DNA of 64,000 nucleotides from Anolis carolinensis (lineage: Eukaryota), in assembly GCF_035594765.1 (NCBI RefSeq), contig NC_085846.1, positions 12,883,190 to 12,947,189 of the forward strand, read 5' to 3'. The notes beneath the pieces are model-generated. The model was not told the DNA's origin. It was given only the letters and a program-made list of their open reading frames with translations, and searched no databases. Below are positions 3,971 to 31,405 of this stretch, in pieces; positions within the stretch are counted from its first letter, which is position 1, and each line of letters opens with the position of its first letter. Position numbers and translations under genes: made by a program.

Positions 3971-5018
3971 ACATATCTATAGTTATTTTCATGGTTGATA
4001 TTTTAACACTTTAGCACAATTGAACTTAACTCAGGTTTTCTTTTTAAGTTGCATTGAAAAAATTGCTGAAAATATATCAGAAATAACATTTTTTTCAGGC
4101 CAATATACTCTTGGAAGAAATAACAAGTATGGATGGATACAATCCATGATACATATTAGTCAACCTGGTTCTTGCAGAAATATTGTGAAGTCTGAAGTTC
4201 ATTTGGATTTTGAATGAATAAATTAAAGCTCCAGGTTTTCCACACCTAAAATATATTTTCTATTCTGCTGCACCTTGGCAAAGGATACCCCAAAATATCA
4301 AGCATCTACATGAACTTGTAATTAAAACTGCCAATAAAGCAATTGAGAGCATGCAAATAATGGCAAACCGTGTACATCTGGAGCAAATTTGCTGACACAA
4401 TTCAGTGGGTAGAAGGCCAAATATAGGCAACTGCTTTATATGAGTCAGTGATTCTTCCTTTGACTTGAATGAGCAGTTAAAGGTTACATATACAAGGGTC
4501 TTTCCCAGATCTAATGATAGAGGTCAAGGATCAAATGTGAGACTTTTGAATATACAACATGTGCTCTTATTTATAAAAATGTCATTGGGTTTTGTCAAAC
4601 AAGAAAAGAACAGCAAAGTATGAATGTGATTCCAGAAAAAATGGGAAAAGACAACTTTGGCAACAGCTTTGGTCGTCTTCAGGGCTGTAGCCAGAAAAAA
4701 AAATTTTGGGGGAAGGGGGAGTTGAAACTTTTTTTTAGTAAATCATGGAATAGTTCGATAACACAACAACATTTTTATTACAGTCCAAAGACTTTTGCTC
4801 TGTAAAAGGTATAAGATACAAGGTATGCAAGGTTAGTAAGGCCAAAAATAGCCAAAACTGATTAAAACACACTATGTGGGTGGAATTGACAGCAGATAAA
4901 ACTGATAAAACCAGGATTAAAACTTATAACCAGCATTTAAGATAGCAATGACCTAGGTAAAAGACTACAAAGGGTAACAGGCATGTTTCATCATGCCATA
5001 ATATAAAATACTTTAAAT

Positions 5019-17776: not shown

Positions 17777-20700
17777 TCATTCTTTCTGATACTCGGTGTA
17801 TTTCTTCGATGACCCATAGACTTTCTCAACTGGGTACTTCAGGCGGTTCTTCTCTATTTTCTGGAGGGCGGCTGTGGGGAGGTCCACGCGGCATTTGTTC
17901 GCAAGGGCCACCAGGTAAATGAGGACGTCACTGAGTTCATCAGAGAGGGCTTCGCGCTCGGAGGCTGTCCATCCTGGCAGGCCTTCGGGGGCATCTTCCC
18001 GCCACTGGCTGAAGACAAGAGACAAAAACATGGAGGTGAAGGCTTGGCAAGACTCCAGTTAAACAGGGAGCAAGAAAAGCTCAGAAGGAAGGAGCTCTGG
18101 ATTTCTGAAAGGGACAGACAATAAGCCTCATTCCTGCATGGAAGCCATACCCTTGGCCCCAAAAGCAGGGCGGGGAAGGCAATACACCAAATGACTAACT
18201 CCTCTATTTTTCTACAGTCAAGACTCGCATCTCCTTCATAAATGGTGAATGTCTATTAGTAATACCAATCAAATTTACAGTAATAAAATATAACATTAGG
18301 AAGTTATAGCATTCAAACATGACAACATCTCCATTTAAAGAGGATTTGACAATACAGCAAGACCCCGTATTTGTTGTCAGCCAGATCGAATTACATTAAA
18401 TTGTGGGTACTGTCAGTTTTATATTATTTGGGTCATTTCTTAAGTGAAAATGAATAAGTGTTTGCAGGAATCATGTCCCATCTGTATTTGACCAGCAGCA
18501 ATTAAGACACCTGCTTTAGATTGAGGGCTATTAATAGAGTCTGAGTAAGTCTTATGTTAGTGTTGTTAGAGTGTTGTAAAGTGCAGTGTTGTAGTGTGTG
18601 CTGTGATGGTGGCAAAGATGGTATTGCTGCTGAAGAGCTACTGAAGTGGAACCGAAGAGAGGTTTGAAGACGGAGAGTCCAGAAACCACAGAGGTTAAAG
18701 CGTCAAGATAAGAAAGCTTTGTGTTTGCTGCTGATATAAGCAAAGGACTGTGTTTTGTATGTTTTGTTTATATAAATCTTTCTTTACCAAAGGACAGTTT
18801 TGTTTTTGGAGTTATTCTTCTTGGACGAGGGTGCAACTTCCGCAGAAGGGGTTGAGAGTTTGGAACTCAATTGGCTAGCTGCGTCATGTACGACCTAGTG
18901 TCATTAAATTACCTGACGTTTGGTCCCAGCATACCATAGATTTGCAATGGAGGATCCCAGAGAAGTCCTCTACTGTGACACTATGACCCTTTCTATTTAT
19001 TATTTTTATTTAAAATATTTATATTCCGTCCTTCTCACCCCGAAGAGGACTCAGACATATTTACAACATATTTACAGCAAGCATTCCATGCTGAGACATA
19101 AAATAATTATAAGTATAAACAAACATTAAAACATTAAAAACATTGAATATTAAACATTAAAGTCAGTTGTTTAAACCAACTTAGGACACCATGCTGCCAT
19201 ATAAAATCCAGATTATCTGCTTTCAATTGGATTATATGGCAGTGTAGATTTATATAATCCAGTTCTGGACACTTTGCCTCCTTTACTCAAAGAAAGAGAA
19301 AGGAATGCTATTTTGGAGTCATGATATGTTTGCAGGGAGTCAGTTCCTGATCCTTGGCATTGTTTTTAGGGAAAAGATGCGTTTTGGAAGTATTGGAAAG
19401 GTGGCAGATTTCCAAGGAAACAGTCTGGCTTAAGAGATGTTCTTCTCCAGGAGACCGAGGGAGAAAGGATATGGTAATATTTGGATGCATGAGGATGAAT
19501 GTGTATATGTAATGTGAATGCTGAGTAACTGTAGGTTGTTTGTGGATTCAACACAGTTACATAGAATCTGTATGTCTGTATCTCCAATGTCGTTCTTTGT
19601 GTAAAATTGTAAAAGTTCTGATATACTCTCTCACACTGAAATTGCATTAAAAAGAACTTTTGTTTAAAAAGTATTCATGACATCCCAATCAAAATGGTTA
19701 TGGATGAGGAAAGAGACGGAGCTTTCTACTGGAATGACTGCACTGTGTGAGAAAGGCTTCAACAGACCCATGAGATATTCCCAAAGTTGCTCTGGTATCG
19801 CCCAAGGAAGTACCACTTGGCCTGTTCTATTCTCTTGGAAATGTGACTCTTCTGGACTGAAAATCTCAGCTGGTCTTGAAGTCCAGAAAGGAACACTTCC
19901 AAGATCCAATAAGTATATTCTAAAGTCCATACTTACAAGAGTTCTGCCAACTCTCCAACTTCCCCAACGAGTGCAAGAAGCAGGTTTCGAGGCTGGTGGT
20001 ACTTTCCCCAGCCACGCTCTGCTGCAAATGCAATCTGGAGCTTGCGACTGTGGGAAACATAACAAAGAGACAGGGATCAGGGCAGGATGGACAAGAGTTT
20101 GAGACCAAAGAGAATTCTGCAGGATGCAAATCAAAAGAAAGGAAGAAACTGAGGTTGACTCTATGGAGACAGTGAATGGGGTGTACATAGGGTGTCTCAC
20201 ATGTCTTCCAAGGTGGGTTCAGCGCTGAACTGAAAAGGCTCTGTTGCATTTCTGAGCCCGTCATGCGCGGATGCCTTATTTGTTTCCTCCTCTTTTGTCT
20301 TCTGAGAACAAGCCAAGGAGCACGATCCCTGAATGAAAAAAACCCAGAACAACAGAAAACATGAGGAAAACATTCCTTGCCAGTTTCTATCGTTAATTTA
20401 AAATGGAACAGCATACTGTTTGGTGTTGAAAGCCAAAACTGGCAGCAAAGTAGGCCAAGCACTGGCATCGTATTCCCTACTTAATAAACCAGAATCTTTC
20501 TGGGTCATAGAATAAAGTGACACTAGATAGCTCATCCCAAGACACTAGGTATTATAATAGTTCTGAGTTCTGCTGTTTCACTCTCAGGACCATTTACTAT
20601 TGTGGTTGTATGCTTCGGTTCATTTCTGACTTATGGAGACATTACAGTGACCGTGGCAATTTTTCATGATGCTATCTTGTCTTGTCTTGATTGGAAGACC

Positions 20701-21922
20701 ATCTCTTAGTTACTCTGCAGAATTAAACTATAGTATATTAATCTCCTTGATTCCCAGTTATAATTGGAAAGTAAAAAGGACTAGAACTATAAAGAGCATT
20801 GTGCATCAACATTACAATTTGACACTTCTGGGGACTTCCAACAGGTGTAATTTCTTTTTTCATCAGAAAGTGGGCAATTTGGTTGGATTAAAGGCCGCAA
20901 AAACTAAGGTGAAGTTGGAAGCAATACTGTGTTGTCGAAGGCTTTCATAGCTGGAATCACTAGGTTGTTGTGCATTTTCTGAGCTTTATGGCCATGCTCC
21001 AGAAGCATTCCCTTCTGATGTTTCATCCATATCTATGGCAAGCATCCTCAGAGGACCTCACAACCTATGAGGATGCCTGCCATAGATGTGGGCAAAACAT
21101 CAGGAGAGAATGCTTCTGGAACATGGCCATACAGCCCAGAAAATGCACAACAACCCAATTTTGGATACTGTCAGGAGCAATTTTGGATACGCCAGCACAA
21201 ACTCTCACTTCAGGACAAAAACTTAAATTTAATACTGATATTTTTAGCTTTAACAAAATTATTAAATGCCTAGATTATTGTATATTTACATTCATAGGAA
21301 TTTGCAAAAAAAATTGTTCAGAAATTTTAATCAAATACATGTCCTTTACCCTCAAGCATTCTAACGAACCTGATTATTCATGTAGTGGTGATGCAACCAT
21401 TGTGCAACCATTTTACTATATGAAGCTTATTATCAATTAATATACATTTGCATTTATATTCATTTGCATCTATACTGTAGAATGAATGAGGTTTGAAACT
21501 ACATTGACTGCCACGGCTCAATGCTATGGAATCCTAGGAGTTGTAGTTTGGTGAGGCACTCTGCCAGGGAAGAATAAAACCTTGTAATACTACAACTCTC
21601 AAAGTTTCATATCATTGAGCCATGGTAATTAAAGTGATATCAAACTGCATTAATTCCACAGTGTAGATGCACTCTGAGTTAGACAGAAGAAAAATAGAAA
21701 TGACAGCTTGGCATACCAATTCCAAAGCAAAAGCAGCGCTGAGGATCAAAATTTGCCCATCCTGATATAAAGGAAGGTACTACAACACACACATTTTTTC
21801 ATCTGGTATAAATGAGGTTTAAGTGGGAGTCTTAGGAGGGTTAAGCAGACCTTACACCTTCCTAACCTGCATGGAGAAATTTAATCTATATTTGATCAAA
21901 GTGTATGTGTATGTATATGTGC

Positions 21923-21957
<35 letters not shown>

Positions 21958-22645
21958 AGAAGCGGCTTGAGAACATACTGCAAGTCGCTTCTGGTATGAG
22001 AGAATTGACAGACTACAGAGACATTGCCCAGGGGATGCCTGGATATGTTAGCTGGGAGGCTTCTCTCATGTTCCCACAAGCTAGAGCTGACAGACGGGAG
22101 CTCATCCCATCTTGAGGATTTGAACCGGCAACCTTCAGATCAGCAACCCGACCTTCAGGTCAGTAGTTCAGCCAACACAAGGGTTTAACCCACTGCGCCA
22201 CTGCAAAGCCCATATTAATATGTATATTAATAATATTTTGTTTTATATTGCTGTTTTAATCATGTTGTACCCTGCCTTGAGTCACAAGGAGAGGTGGGCA
22301 ATAAATGAATTATTATTATTATGCAAAGACACAATTCACCAATGCATAGATGCCAGCCATTACCTCAGTCTTCATCATGGTATTACTACAATTCTTTGAA
22401 AGGCTAAGTCCTGCATTATCAAGGGGTGTCGCACAATCTGGAGTGGCACATGTTTGATATTTGGTGGAGTTCATGTGATGCTGGAGGACGGCATAGTTGG
22501 CTTTCACCTCAGACTCACAGACCCTGCAGGCCGCCATTTGCTCGTCTTCCACCACAGGCCGAATCCAGTCCTTCAAATCCGCCTCCTTCTCCAAGTCTCT
22601 GCAGTACTTTTCCTCTTCTTTGTCTCTCTTACACAACGTCATCAT
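17777..22645 (-). CDS. DCTPP1: dCTP pyrophosphatase 1 (MazG-like all-alpha NTP pyrophosphatase) with predicted N-terminal zinc-finger extension (250 aa)
   Basis: Exons (-): 22645-22364 (zinc-finger exon, inferred), 20328-20201 (...FQFSAEPTLEDI), 20047-19937 (RKLQIAFAAERGWGKYHQPRNLLLALVGEVGELAELF), 18008-17777 (QWREDAPEG...ELSDVLIYLVALA...SSKKYTEYQKE*). Phases 0/2/2 consistent, total 753 nt. The three catalytic-domain exons are unambiguous; the first coding exon is inferred. Confidence 0.9.
20928..21158. mobile_element. Penelope-derived inverted repeat (in DCTPP1 intron)
   Basis: Same family as 3721-3970. Confidence 0.7.
21900..21957. repeat. (TA/TG)n microsatellite at SINE tail
   Basis: gtgtatgtgtatgtatatgtgcatatatat followed by a (TG) run. 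Confidence 0.85.
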
Positions 22646-22653
22646 TGGCAGGT
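22364..22653 (-). CDS. Exon encoding a BED-like/hAT-transposase-type zinc finger, predicted first coding exon of DCTPP1
   Basis: Acceptor ccctgttcccttccttgcag|ACC at 22653; ATG ATG at 22645/22642; open for 94 codons (KYCRDLEKEADLKDWIRPVVEDEQMAACRVCESEVKANYAVLQHHMNSTKYQ); donor GAG|gtaatg at 22364 is phase 0, matching the phase-0 DCTPP1 exon at 20328. Confidence 0.7.
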
Positions 22654-23037
22654 CTGCAAGGAAGGGAACAGGCTGACTTTGTAAAACAAGAGTGGGAATC
22701 ATGTGGCCCATCCAATGACTGTTGAACTCAAAGTTGCAGCAGACTAGTTGGCATAGAATTATTGCAGCTTAACACCACTTTAACTGCTATGGAATCTTGA
22801 GAATTGTAGTTTTAGAATGCCTTCAATCGTCTCTACCAAAGAGCGGTGCCCCACCAAACTACAACTCCCAGGATTCCATAACATTGAGCCGTGGCAGTTA
22901 AAATTATTTCAAACTGCATTAATTCTATAGTGTAGATGCACCCTATGACCCAGGGTTTGAATCCCTGCATATTGGCGATGAAGCCCTCTGGATTACCTTG
23001 GTCAAATCACACCCTCTCAATCAAGAAAATCCTAATA

Positions 23038-23347
23038 CAGTAGTCTCACTTATCCAACATTCGCTTATCCAATGTTCTGAATTATCCAACGCAATCTGCC
23101 TTTTAGTAGTCAATATTTTCATGGTGCTAAATTTGTAAATACAGTAATTACTACATAACATTACAGTGTATTAAACTGCTTTTCTGTCAATTTGTTGTAA
23201 AACATGATATTTTGGTGCTTAATTTGTAAAATCATAATGTAATTTGACATTTAATAGGCTTTTCCTTAATCCCTCCTTATTATCCAACATTTTCACTTAT
23301 CCAACATTCTGCTGGGCCATTTATGTTGGATAAGTGAGACTCTATTG
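23038..23347. mobile_element. Tc1/mariner (Tigger/pogo-like) MITE
   Basis: TIR CAGTAG(AG)TCTCACTTATCCAAC, TA TSD; second copy at 27482-27804. Confidence 0.8.
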
Positions 23348-23439
23348 TATAAGTGAATGATTTAAAGACTCATAAATGTTCAAACAAGGGTCCAGGGAGC
23401 CAGCCTCTCCTCTCAGCCTGACCTACCTTGCAATGTTGT

Positions 23440-23968
23440 TGGTACTGTTGGAATTCAACCCCCTACTGTCAAAGTCTGCAGTCCTCAATGAGGAATAGTT
23501 AGTTCGCTTAGAATAGGCTGAGGAAAACTTCTTCCCCCCTGATTTCTGAATGATAGTTGGAATGTACCTATTTCTTCTCCCCTTTCTATTTCTGTTCTCA
23601 TTCTGACTGGTTATGTGGAATTGATACTTTGCAGGTGCATGCCTTTTACTTCTGACTTCTACTTTTTTACATCGTAGTGTGTGCTGTATGTGTAGAGACC
23701 TCTCTCTGCTTGTGTGCGTTAGAGAGATGGGAGTTTGAAAGAAGCTCAGACCCAGTTATTTACCATTTACTATTAAGAAATGTAGTTATTATTGTTCGTA
23801 AATTAACCTTTTTATAAAAGATTTAATTCTGGATAATTGCTTCCTAAGTTCTTTACAGGCACATGGCACTTCATGCTACTTGCTGTGAGCTGAATGCTCA
23901 ACTATAAGTAATCTGTGGATGATCTGCTGTAGCTTTTTGGGAATTTTCCCTATCAGAAAATCCAAACA
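23440..23968. mobile_element. Putative solo LTR
   Basis: TG...CA ends flanked by 5-bp direct repeat GTTGT (23435-23439, 23969-23973); interrupts an old MIR-like SINE. Confidence 0.55.
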
Positions 23969-24339
23969 GTTGTGAGCATAAAGGGTCCCATCTACACTCT
24001 AAAACTGATGCAGTTTGACACCACTTGGACTGCCATGGCTCAATACTATGGAGTCATGGGAGTAGTGGTTTCACAGGTTCTTCAGCCATCTCTGGGTACA
24101 TCTGCTGGTGTATCATCAAACTAAAAATCCCAGGCCTCAACAACATTGAGCCATGGAAGTTAAAGTGATGCCCAAACTGCATTACTTCTATAGTGTGGAT
24201 GCAACCAGAGGGACAGGAGGAAAGGCAGGCTATAACTTGTATTGCTTATTCGTAGATGTGTATAATTAATAAAAATTATTTAAACATAAATAACAGATTA
24301 ATTACACAAGGATGCGAGAAACAGCAGCAGAAAAGATCA

Positions 24340-24680
24340 CGAGCACAACCTACCTTAATTGCACTGAATCGCCTAATGCAAAAATCCACGCAAAAAAGAC
24401 CAAACACTGATTTCAAGAAGCCACGTGGTTTTTTTCCCGGGTTCAACACACGGACAGAACTCCCAGTGTGCACCAATCAAAATGCAGGCATTCAGGTGAG
24501 CTCTAATTGGATAGCGCGGCAATGACGAAAGCATCTATCACCCAATCAGAGAATGCTGGAGGCAGGCTTTGTGAAGATCACTGCACACAATAGGGATGGA
24601 AGAAGGGGCGGGACAAGGAAATGTTTTGATTCTTTAGAGTGGCAGTAAAAGCAGCCAATAGGGAACGCGATGGCCTACAG
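24340..24680 (-). promoter_or_regulatory. Probable DCTPP1 promoter and non-coding exon 1
   Basis: Local CpG enrichment, several CCAAT boxes, GC box (GGGGCGGGA ~24605), CACGTG (24422), ZNF143-like AACTCCCAGTGTGC (~24458). Strong - strand donor AAG|GTAGGT at 24354; splicing it to 22653 places an in-frame TAA just upstream of ATG 22645. Confidence 0.55.
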
Positions 24681-25659
24681 GGTGCTTGCATATATAATTA
24701 GCAGGATAGGTTTGCTCACAAAGTTTCAAAGAAAACGCAGATGGATCTGGATACAGGGAACTGAAAGATCGAGAGAGTATAATAAAACGTTTAAGCCTGA
24801 GGCAGAGGGTGTTGATTGGTGTTTATGTATTTGCCTAAAAAAGGGACAAAGGACCCATTCACACTATACAATTACAGCAGTATTACCCCACTTTAACTGC
24901 AATGTTTCCATCTAATGATGAGATTTGCAGTTGGAAAATGTCCTAAAGCATTTTGGCAGAGAATTTTCAATATCTTACAAAACTACGAATTCCTAGATTC
25001 TACAGATTAAAGTCATGGCAATTAAGGTGGTATCAAAGTGCTATAACTGTGTAGTGTGGAAGGGTAAGTTTTCCCTGTTATGCTTAATTTCTGATCGGCA
25101 AGCTCTTACAGGCACAGCAACATCTTTGGCTGGATATACACTGCCATATAATGCAGTTTGAACTGCATTGTATGGCAGTATAGCCCCAAGCTATGAGAAG
25201 AGTGGTGGCGCAATGGGTTAAACCCTTGTGCCGGCTGAACTGCTGACCTGAGGGTTGGGTTGCTGACCTGAAGGTTGCTGGTTTGAATCCGCAAGATGGG
25301 GTGAGCTCCCGTCTGTCAGCTCTAGCTTGCAGGGACATGAGAGAAGCCTCCCAGCAGGATGGTAACATATCCGGGCATCCCCTAGGCAACATCTCTGTAG
25401 ACAGCCAATTCTCTCACACTAGAAACGACTCACTGTATGTTCTCAAGTAGCTTCTGACACGATAAAAAAAAGAGAAAACCTTGGAACTCTTAGCAAAAAT
25501 AGCCGACTCGGACACAAAGTGGGATTCATTGGGACTGGACCCAAGCTACAGCTCATGTACTTTGGCCTCAGGTTCTGTTATCAGCTCTTTTGTTGAATAG
25601 TAAACTAACTATTTTGAGCTTGGAAGAGAAGCTTTAGCTGCAGCTCTCTGAATGTTTCG

Positions 25660-26006
25660 AGGGTGCATCTACATCAGGCATGGGCAAACTTGGGCCCTCC
25701 AGGTGTTTTGGACTCCAACTCCCACAATTCCTAACAGCCGGTAGGCTGTAAGGAATTGTGGGAGTTGAAGTCCAAACACCTGGAGGGCCCAAGTTTGCCC
25801 ATGCTTGATCTACACTGTAGAGTTAGTGCAGTTTGACACCACTTTAACTGCTACGGCTCAATGTGGAGTTGCTTTACAAGGCCTTTAGCCTTCTCTGCCA
25901 AAAAAGGCTGTTGCCTCCCGAACTACAACTCCCAGGATTCCACAGCATTGAGCCATGGCAATTAAAGTGGTGTGAAACCGCATTAATTCTACAATGTAGA
26001 TGCACT
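25660..26006. mobile_element. GGGTGCATCTACAC-type palindromic MITE with nested hAT MITE (25675-25807)
   Basis: Host TIR GGGTGCATCTACA...TGTAGATGCAC; nested MITE with TSD ATCTACAT/ATCTACAC. Host-family copies at ~21465-21674, 22755-22943 and 23983-24205. Confidence 0.7.
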
Positions 26007-26119
26007 CCTAGTTTTCTAGAGGCCTGTTTCTGTGAGCAGTAGGAATCTGCTTGGCTTGCAGAGTAATATTTACATTCAGTTTGAGCGGCAGCTGTGACTT
26101 GTGGGGGAGAAAGGCCATT

Positions 26120-26310
26120 TCTGCGAGTAAACAGGTGAGGGGTCCAAAGTGCCAAAATGCAGAAATAAAATCCTGATTGTAGCCCTAATCCCACCCCTCA
26201 CGTTGCTGCCTCCCACCCCTCAGGAATGCAGGAAATGTGTCTCGTGCAACCAGTTGTGCAAGAGGAAGAAGTTGCAGAGAGACATCGCGGAGCCTGGCTC
26301 TTTGGGTAAG
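26120..26310 (+). promoter_or_regulatory. Probable QPRT promoter and non-coding exon 1
   Basis: FOX motif GTAAACA 26127-26133 next to HNF4-like GGGTCCAAAGTGC 26140-26152; donor TGG|GTAAGT at 26305/26306; QPRT ATG lies 5 nt after the acceptor at 28409. Confidence 0.45.
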
Positions 26311-26737
26311 TGACCAGCACAGCGGCCTTTTTAAAATTAGCTGCATTGCAAGTCCCTTTGGACAGGGGGGCATGTAAAGCAATTATATCCCCACAGGAAA
26401 GCCTGCCTTGTTGTCTCTTCTTTTCTCTTAACTGTAGATGAATGGGAAGTGCACCTAGTCTTAATTCATTGGGTGCATCTACACTGGGCATGGGCAAACT
26501 TTGGCCCTCCAGGTGTTTTGGACTCCAACTCCCACAATTCCTAACAGCCGGTAGGCTGTTAGGAATTGTGGGAGTTGGAGTCCAAAACACCAGGAGGGCC
26601 AAAATTTGCTCATGCCTGATCTAGACATTATGAAACATTACTTTTTCACTGTTCCATTGTCAAAACACCATAAAAATGACTAAATGAAGCAGCAGTTCTG
26701 TAAGAGATAGAAATAATGTAGCCTTCCAGGTGTTGAT

Positions 26738-28190
26738 TCATAGAATAATAGAGTTGGAAGAGGCCACATGGGCCATCTAGTCTAACCCCTGCTATGTAGG
26801 AAAAACACAACCAAAGCATTCCTGACAGATGGCCATCCAACCTCTGTTTAAAAGCTTCCAAGGAAGGAGCTTCCACTATACTTCAAGGCAGAGAGTTCCA
26901 TCATTGAATAACTCTTACAATCAGGGAGTTCTTGCTAAGGAAACTCCTTTCCAGTAATTTGAATCCATTGCTCCAGCGCTACAGAAAACAAGCCTGCTCC
27001 CTCTTCCTTATGGCATCCTTTCACATATTTATACATGACTCTCATGTCTCCTCTCAGCCTTCTCTTCTGCAGGCTAAACATGCCCAGCTCTTTAAGATGC
27101 TCCTCAGAGGGATTCATAGTCTCCAGACCTTTGGACATTTTAGTTGCCTTCCTCTGGACACCTTCCAGCTTGTCAATAGCTCTTTTGAACTGTGGTGCCC
27201 AGAATTGGACACAGTATTCCCCGTGAGGTCTAACCAAAGCAGACTAGAGAGGCACCATGACTTCCTTCGATCTAGACACTAGACTCCTTTTGATGCAGCC
27301 CAAAATCCCATTGGCTTTTTTAGCTGCTGCATCACACTGTTGGCTCATGTTCAACTTGTTGCCCACAATCTTTTTCACAAGGACTGTTGTCAAGCCAAGC
27401 ATCACCCATCCTGTATCTTTGCATTTTGTTTTTTCTGCCCAAGTGTAGTATCTTATATTTGTCCTTGTTGGAATTCATGTACAGTAGAGTCTCACTTATC
27501 GAACATAAACGGGCTGGCAGAACATTGGATAAGCGAATATGTTGGATAATAAGGAGAGATTAAGGAGAAGCCTATTAAACATCAAATTAGGTTATGATTT
27601 TACAAATTAAGCACCAAAACATCATGTAATACAACAAATTTGACAGAAAAAGTAGTTCAATATGTAGTAATGCCACGTAGTAATTACTGTATTTACGAAT
27701 TTAGCACCAAAATATCATGATATATTGAAAACATTGACTACAAAAATGTGTTGGATAATCCAGAACGTTGAATAAGCGAATGTTGGATAAGTGAGACTCT
27801 ACTGTAGTTAGTTTTGGCCCAGCTCTCTAATCTGTTCAGGTCATTCTGAATTTTGATCCTGTCCTCTGGAGTATTAGCTATCCCTCCTAATTTGGTGTCA
27901 TCTGCAAACTTGATAAGCACGCCCTCTAAACCCTCATCCAAGTCATTAATAAAGATACTGAATAGTACTGGGCTCAGGACTGAACCCTGCGGCACTCCAC
28001 TAGTAACTTATTTCCAGCATGAAGAGGAACCATTGGTAAGCGCCCTTTGGGTTCATTCCCTTAACCAGTTATAGATCCACCTAATAACATTGCCTAGCCC
28101 ACATTTGATTAGTTTGCTTGCAAGAAGGTCATGGTGGACTTTGTCAAAGGCCTTTCTGAAGTCAAGATATGCTACATCCATAGCATGTTG
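26738..28190 (-). mobile_element. CR1 LINE fragment interrupted by a Tigger-like MITE (27482-27804)
   Basis: [37 protein letters not shown], 3' UTR; MITE with TA TSD. Confidence 0.88.
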
Positions 28191-28413
28191 ACGAAGTACA
28201 TCTCCTAGCAGCCCTAGCCAGCAGTGGCTATAATGAGGAGTGCTGGGAACTGCAATTCAATTACATCAGGTGATCTCCATCCCTGCTCTGTGATGAGATG
28301 CCAAAATTCACCCATTATTCCTGCTGTTAGGAAGCACCATCAGTGGCCACTGGGATGAGTTTGGTCTGGTATGTCTTTGCCAATGTCTCCATGGTTTCTT
28401 CTCCTTAGTCTTC

Positions 28414-31405
<2,992 letters not shown>

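Follow-up and report, generated by a model that had tools for sequence, protein, structure and literature searches.

Lizard DCTPP1 headed by hAT transposase fingers: a probable host–transposase fusion gene of double origin

Introduction

How does a small enzyme of the nucleotide pool come to begin with the finger of a transposase, and is that finger of any use to it? The question is raised by the DCTPP1 gene of the lizard Anolis carolinensis, for which an earlier reading of the DNA by itself (the sequence-only reading) had proposed that a hAT-type zinc-finger exon is spliced onto the dCTP pyrophosphatase. The window analysed here, 64,000 nucleotides (nt) of contig NC_085846.1 without any N, holds this gene as five exons on the minus strand. 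Mammalian DCTPP1 forms tetramers and has a preference for dCTP and its 5-methyl or halogen derivatives (PMC4491611); the human protein, which occurs in the nucleus, cytosol and mitochondria, guards against a mutator phenotype (PMC7162842). Our best overall explanation of the lizard gene, to which we give a probability of roughly 0.7, is a host–transposase fusion of double origin.

Results

The finger exon is spliced to DCTPP1

Every exon border in the Anolis gene (Table 1) is AG/GT with compatible phases, and the joint of exons 1 and 2 sets a TAA just before the ATG at 22645, from which the coding part of the 290-nt exon 2 runs to 22364 (94 codons, including the start codon). The splice sites, the phases, this in-frame stop and the lack of an ATG in the exon at 20328–20201 are all as the sequence-only reading had described them. 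Contigs from sequencing runs were compared with 19300–24950, a range that covers three of the four junctions and leaves 19937–18008 outside; the run type was guessed to be RNA, and we read the contigs as such because their joints remove GT-AG introns exactly. A 1,247-nt contig of run X14 joins 24455–24354, 22653–22364, 20328–20201 and 20047–19937 with zero mismatch, and so contains all three junctions that had been proposed (24354 to 22653, 22364 to 20328 and 20201 to 20047). A 1,088-nt contig of run X2 joins exons 2, 3 and 4, and run X11 holds the junction 22364–20328. The three runs come from three separate studies, all of which show the key junction of exons 2 and 3, and exon 2 is present in 18 runs from six studies.

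Among the contigs listed, none skipped exon 2 and none used the intronic ATG at 20373, which the earlier reading had named as a possible other start of the mRNA. An annotation artefact or an intronic start was rejected on the evidence of the spliced contigs. The RefSeq model of A. carolinensis DCTPP1 is the same protein of 250 residues, under a name that is silent on a transposase origin. A single unspliced contig (run X5, 22176–22652) runs through the exon 2 donor and represents either a retained intron or DNA. The last codons of exon 2 (22364–22378) include two in-frame Met codons, from which leaky scanning could yield a finger-less form of ∼160 residues.

The donor of the Anolis finger

A word-index homologue search with exon 2 by itself, restricted to a length window, gave no match. 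An exhaustive search of 1.84 billion proteins with the exon 2 peptide, whose finger we call B, gave 47 at E ≤ 0.001; apart from orthologues, the best of them include the N-termini of hAT transposases. Skink DCTPP1 orthologues came first, followed by proteins in which finger B heads a transposase (from axolotl, a tick and a 688-residue lacertid protein). The similarity to these transposases, which contain DUF4371 and FAM200/ZBED5 RNase-like domains, spans the finger and the linker as far as the donor site. They also align, at E 1e-13 to 1e-26, with the hAT transposases that carry the gecko-type finger A described below. These comparisons point firmly to a transposase of the hAT superfamily, with the hAT catalytic core, as the donor of finger B, and the matches and the spliced contigs together bear out a real spliced fusion of a hAT finger with DCTPP1.

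The label ‘BED-like’, which had also been proposed, holds for a hAT transposase finger and only loosely for BED itself. The Pfam zf-BED profile (PF02892) scores 14 bits (E 0.053) on the Anolis exon and 19.6 bits on the best orthologue, where the gathering cut-off of 20.6 bits is not reached; weak zf-BED matches occur in 17 of 50 members of the finger family, and the gecko finger has no zf-BED match in Pfam. The AlphaFold model of finger B is a beta-beta-alpha C2H2 fold. In structure searches both fingers matched matrin/U1-type C2H2 fingers (TUT4, SF3A2, TUT1) at Z 4.5–5.8 and the BED domains of Hermes or ZBED2 at Z 2.0–2.6, so that the matrin/U1-type fold is at least as similar. A PDB sequence search with a B-type transposase gave no link to Hermes.

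Several other proteins carry B-family or similar fingers. A B-family hAT transposase-like protein of 687–688 residues in Podarcis and Zootoca (P0012, P0051–P0054), recorded as ‘uncharacterized’, is >90% conserved among lacertids and may be domesticated. A B-family hAT finger precedes quinolinate phosphoribosyltransferase (QPRT) in the tunicate Phallusia mammillata (P0046, residues 1–90), a possible enzyme fusion; that QPRT is also the neighbour of squamate DCTPP1 is probably coincidence. A psyllid transcript model (Cacopsylla melanoneura P0007, residues 45–175) has two hAT-like fingers ahead of a peroxiredoxin domain, and a C2H2 zinc-finger array protein of Polypterus senegalus (P0023), with an N-terminal B-family finger, is a candidate fusion.

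A second finger, captured separately

All six gecko proteins begin with another finger, which we call A. The profiles of A and B cross-score at about 15 bits, against 140–175 bits on their own members, although the two fingers are distant homologues; the A- and B-type transposases are about 25% identical. A protein scan of viral and metagenome contigs with the gecko finger gave no match; a degenerate DNA pattern recovered A-type fingers heading transposases with a hAT dimerisation domain. The element closest to finger A (L042) is bounded by terminal inverted repeats and flanked by an 8-bp target duplication. A second A-type family (L045, L050, L111 and L115) consists of near-identical 2.47-kb copies with intact open reading frames (ORFs), 14-bp terminal repeats and 6-bp target duplications, the last as in hAT6 (PMC12730594). 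The copies of this hAT6-like family belong to the host DNA of a metagenome and look recently active. Judged by these relatives, the donor of finger A was again a hAT superfamily transposase.

In the tree, the B exons form a clade inside the B-type transposases (support 100/97 and 97/91) and the A exons fall among the A-type; a single clade of A and B exons was rejected by the approximately unbiased (AU) test (p-AU 0.0003). The locus of the cordylid Hemicordylus has the order non-coding exon (homologous to Anolis exon 1), A, B, core, and its isoform X1 reads A, then B, then enzyme. In Gekko japonicus the stretch that separates A from the core still includes a B exon, complete in length but broken (87.7 bits, E 9e-27). 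Heteronotia shows a fainter B remnant (14–15 bits, where the highest score among 500 shuffles was 7.2), and none was found in Eublepharis. The reading of the gecko finger as a diverged orthologue or a tandem duplicate of B was rejected on the profile cross-scores, the tree and the decayed Gekko exon. Splicing from A to B requires a 12-nt in-frame leader between the B acceptor and its ATG; it is kept in the skink, cordylid, anguid and lacertid, and the Anolis leader is one base short of this form. No remnants of finger A were found in the introns of Anolis, skink, anguid and lacertid, nor of a transposase body at any of the loci.

Sequence comparison thus places two separate hAT captures in DCTPP1 intron 1, at a time when geckos had not yet diverged from other squamates. 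Because Hemicordylus has A and B in tandem, Gekko has a dead B exon and the two kinds of exon form separate clades, both would have been present in the squamate ancestor and then lost reciprocally. By the same comparison finger A was lost at least twice, in skinks and in the clade of lacertids, anguids, iguanians and snakes. We regard this origin and history of the double capture as very probable.

Distribution and a caecilian model

Every squamate orthologue examined at full length has the N-terminal extension, and fish and most amphibian orthologues are without it. Squamate proteins are mostly 236–306 residues long, those of fish and most amphibians about 140–200 without a finger, and that of mouse, also without one, 170, in line with the finger-free human enzyme named in the sequence-only reading. 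Finger B is carried by iguanians, anguids, lacertids, skinks and cordylids, is eroded in snakes and is truncated in Rhineura. The chimera, of 250 residues in Anolis, is therefore real but squamate-wide, being one of two captures, where the sequence-only reading had spoken of a lineage-specific one; a novelty confined to Anolis was rejected. The order QPRT–DCTPP1–septin or DCTPP1–septin is found at all loci. The lacertid Podarcis protein has an extra C-terminal tail of ∼55 residues (L006, 7451–7864). The distribution is drawn from the 120 matches listed; since no turtle, crocodilian, bird or tuatara sequence is among them, the capture can be dated only to some time before the gecko lineage separated from all other squamates. 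That split took place about 190–200 million years ago. Presence in birds, turtles or crocodiles was not found in the supplements of PMC4290089.

The RefSeq DCTPP1 of the caecilian Microcaecilia unicolor (P0183, 244 residues) also starts with a B-family finger (residues 1–93); the Geotrypetes record is without one. This finger is 50–64% identical to those of free transposases, against 44–51% to squamate B. In the model the transposase-derived part is longer by a few residues, and the ancestral Met is still present after the finger. In the best tree this finger does not group with squamate B, and a shared origin is neither supported nor rejected (p-AU 0.12). The young-looking Microcaecilia finger, predicted in a RefSeq model, is probably a third, independent capture.

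Constraint and decay of the fingers

Ratios of non-synonymous to synonymous substitution (dN/dS) were estimated with a custom codon-model script from 3–5 sequences each. Finger A (0.07; its whole exon 0.15) is as constrained as the last enzyme exon (0.08), and its sequence is 78–87% identical across geckos and the cordylid. Finger B is moderately constrained, with a value of 0.46 (p 3e-4 against 1) for the finger, 0.55 for the exon and 0.70 (not significant) for the tail of the exon. On single branches finger B gave 0.91 in Anolis and 0.73 in Hemicordylus, over a background of 0.35–0.42; neither value differs from 1, nor significantly from the background. A dN/dS near 1, which had been set down as speaking against the fusion, is therefore found on the Anolis branch taken by itself, and purifying selection is found across lizards.

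All four zinc ligands of B are kept in eight of the nine lizard proteins tabulated. Taking both fingers together, the four ligands are present in most lizards and geckos and are not in A. carolinensis, Hemicordylus B or snakes. In A. carolinensis Tyr63 takes the place of the last His ligand, and a Trp that is otherwise nearly invariant is Leu; A. sagrei keeps both the His and the Trp; a sequencing error at Tyr63 was rejected, as the RNA-type contigs agree. The open frame of exon 2 had been taken as a sign of selection on the finger. This is not borne out in A. carolinensis, with its branch ratio of about 0.9 and its lost ligand, and an open frame is by itself no proof of selection on the finger where the exon supplies the only start codon. 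From its sequence, the A. carolinensis finger is probably weakened and exon 2 serves mainly as start codon and linker. Species with an intact A have a dead or damaged B, and in those that have lost A, B is mostly intact, a pattern suggesting that one working finger is enough; snakes show that zero is also tolerated.

The enzyme and a possible role for the fingers

The core can be aligned with mammalian DCTPP1 along 126 residues (E 6e-48); both acidic metal-binding motifs are present, the catalytic acidic residues are invariant, and by analogy the lizard enzyme should be active and tetrameric. On the history set out above, the 5′ ends of two hAT DNA transposons from different families stayed behind in DCTPP1 intron 1, each exon bringing a transposase start, an N-terminal C2H2 finger, a short linker and a phase-0 donor, with the transposase bodies since gone. 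From the ancestral order of non-coding exon, finger A, finger B and enzyme, geckos kept A whilst B decayed, and cordylids have both, A intact and B damaged. Skinks, lacertids, anguids and iguanians have lost A and begin with B, and B has eroded in snakes and Rhineura. Many species have no in-frame Met in the core exon; the ancestral ATG was lost in many lineages, including Anolis, which makes the fusion obligatory there.

Since the core is predicted to be a tetramer, it would display four fingers, which together may bind DNA or chromatin with avidity; in Hermes it is by multimerisation that enough fingers are brought together for finding the DNA end (PMC10368747). A basic cluster ahead of finger A is a possible nuclear signal. 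An intact finger would then bring the dCTP/5-methyl-dCTP pyrophosphatase into the nucleus and hold it on DNA or chromatin. That finger A is functional we consider very likely. That nucleic-acid tethering in the nucleus is the job of the intact fingers is a tentative proposal by analogy, to which we give slightly less than even odds.

Weighing the explanations

Several results weigh against a fusion kept for its fingers. Damage to finger B in A. carolinensis, Hemicordylus, snakes and Rhineura shows it to be dispensable there; the fold searches place RNA-binding matrin/U1-type fingers above BED domains, all of them weakly; human DCTPP1 gets into the nucleus without any finger (PMC7162842); each dN/dS value comes from few sequences; and the tandem A+B transcript of Hemicordylus is a RefSeq model, not reads. 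The damaged B fingers, including those with branch ratios near 1, are what would be expected of passengers that were spliced in by chance and locked in once the old ATG decayed, the exon being kept for its start codon and frame and the finger being useless. The core exons that have no in-frame Met fit this as well, and an ancestral gene with an open, spliced 5′ leader, as in the caecilian model, would have eased capture. However, a useless finger should not be constrained nearly as tightly as the enzyme core, as finger A is, nor more tightly than the linker of its own exon; the retention of the B ligands in most lizards and the low background ratio also count against chance lock-in, which we think unlikely as the general explanation.

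The two remaining alternatives give the fingers other work. If they had been re-used for binding RNA or a protein, for example in the stability, assembly or placement of the enzyme, the closer resemblance of both predicted folds to matrin/U1-type fingers would be accounted for, as would related fingers on other enzymes (the tunicate QPRT and the psyllid peroxiredoxin). All the Z-scores lie, however, within the range of a common small fold, and in the parent transposases the domain occupies the position of the DNA-binding finger, so that this too appears improbable. A tetramer with four fingers might instead bind the ends of cognate hAT elements and block or mark them, the finger that is kept tracking the hAT family still present. 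Known fusions do bind cognate transposons (10.1101/2020.05.07.082677), and the first ten bases of the A-element terminal repeat occur at 3–4.6 per 10 kb in the gecko and cordylid loci, against 0.8–1.5 in others, although these counts come from few orthologous, non-independent loci. The Hermes finger, moreover, binds subterminal repeats and not the tip; the sequence of A, almost unchanged through a very long period, is unlike an arms race, and there is no repressor domain. We judge transposon control very unlikely. The broader idea that DCTPP1 is a hotspot of convergent capture, with three hAT fingers kept, and replacing each other, to tether the tetramer for local cleaning of modified dCTP, strikes us as doubtful. 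The fusion of double origin, with finger A functional, remains our preferred explanation.

The Anolis locus and its neighbours

Table 1. Features of the DCTPP1 locus, in window positions
Feature	Position	Strand	Basis
Promoter with several CCAAT-box motifs	24456–24665	−	Sequence; nhmmer matches to skink, anguid, cordylid and gecko promoters; transcript contig start at 24455
Exon 1, non-coding, no ATG; source of the in-frame stop before the start codon	24354–24455	−	Spliced contig; homologous exon in Hemicordylus (L004, about 4690–4800)
Intron 1; site of the finger A exon in Hemicordylus, no trace of A in Anolis	22654–24353	−	Locus comparison
Exon 2, captured hAT transposase 5′ end: finger B and linker of about 30 residues; phase-0 donor	22364–22653	−	Contigs, homology, tree
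Zinc finger B, of C2H2 type, with ligands Cys40, Cys43 and His57; Tyr63 stands in place of the fourth, a His, in A. carolinensis	22454–22609	−	AlphaFold, alignment, RNA-type contigs
Exon 3, ancestral first coding exon of DCTPP1: linker and start of MazG core; no in-frame ATG	20201–20328	−	Sequence, contigs
Exon 4, DCTPP1 core with first metal-binding acidic motif	19937–20047	−	Contigs, alignment
Coding part of exon 5, up to the stop codon: MazG-like domain with the second acidic motif	17777–18008	−	Splice sites, domain search

DCTPP1 (minus strand) and QPRT (plus strand, ORF from 28414) lie head to head, ∼4 kb apart (24455–28414). The same layout is seen in the gecko, cordylid and lacertid loci, with a septin gene tail to tail on the other side.

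Discussion

By the criteria of in-frame fusion, junction transcripts and purifying selection (the last not shown on the Anolis branch alone), DCTPP1 is a host–transposase fusion. It resembles the tetrapod fusions of Cosby et al. (10.1101/2020.05.07.082677), in which a transposase DNA-binding domain is joined in frame to a host domain under purifying selection and hAT, the donor here too, is a common source (23% of cases). Their partners are KRAB, SCAN or SET domains, whereas that of DCTPP1 is a nucleotide-pool enzyme; in DCTPP1, moreover, the finger is N-terminal and supplies the start, and two donors have apparently served one gene in turn, with reciprocal loss. SETMAR (SET-mariner) and CSB-PGBD3 likewise have a host enzyme domain spliced to transposase sequence, but there a whole or large transposase is C-terminal in a chromatin or repair protein, whereas DCTPP1 has a finger of ∼60 residues and a linker ahead of a small metabolic enzyme. 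The mammalian enzyme (a MazG-like all-alpha NTP pyrophosphatase; PDB 2OIG, 6SQW, 7MU5) shares an alignable core and the septin neighbour with that of squamates, but its 170 residues include no zinc finger. Like the BED domain of Hermes and those of ZBED proteins, the DCTPP1 fingers are N-terminal hAT transposase zinc fingers of beta-beta-alpha fold; they differ in being C2H2 where Hermes is CCHC, in falling below the zf-BED cut-off and in their low structural similarity.

DCTPP1 was not found in the text or supplements of the Cosby et al. catalogue, whose screen the fingers escape because it required a Pfam transposase domain, which they miss. Nor was DCTPP1 found in the literature together with a transposase, squamates or a zinc finger in the sense of a fusion, in a search that covered few subscription papers, so that an earlier mention is possible. 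What appears to be new is an old, clade-wide fusion without an entry in the published catalogue, whose host is a metabolic enzyme and not a transcription factor. The papers searched do not describe a gene that took equivalent domains from two transposon families one after the other; here the intermediate state would be preserved as fossils, with both fingers in a cordylid and a dead exon in geckos. It follows, too, that a class of hAT fingers goes undetected in screens built on Pfam. Species with only A, only B, both or neither intact form a natural series that bears on whether function or lock-in preserves a captured domain, and on whether the sanitation of dNTPs can be targeted to chromatin.

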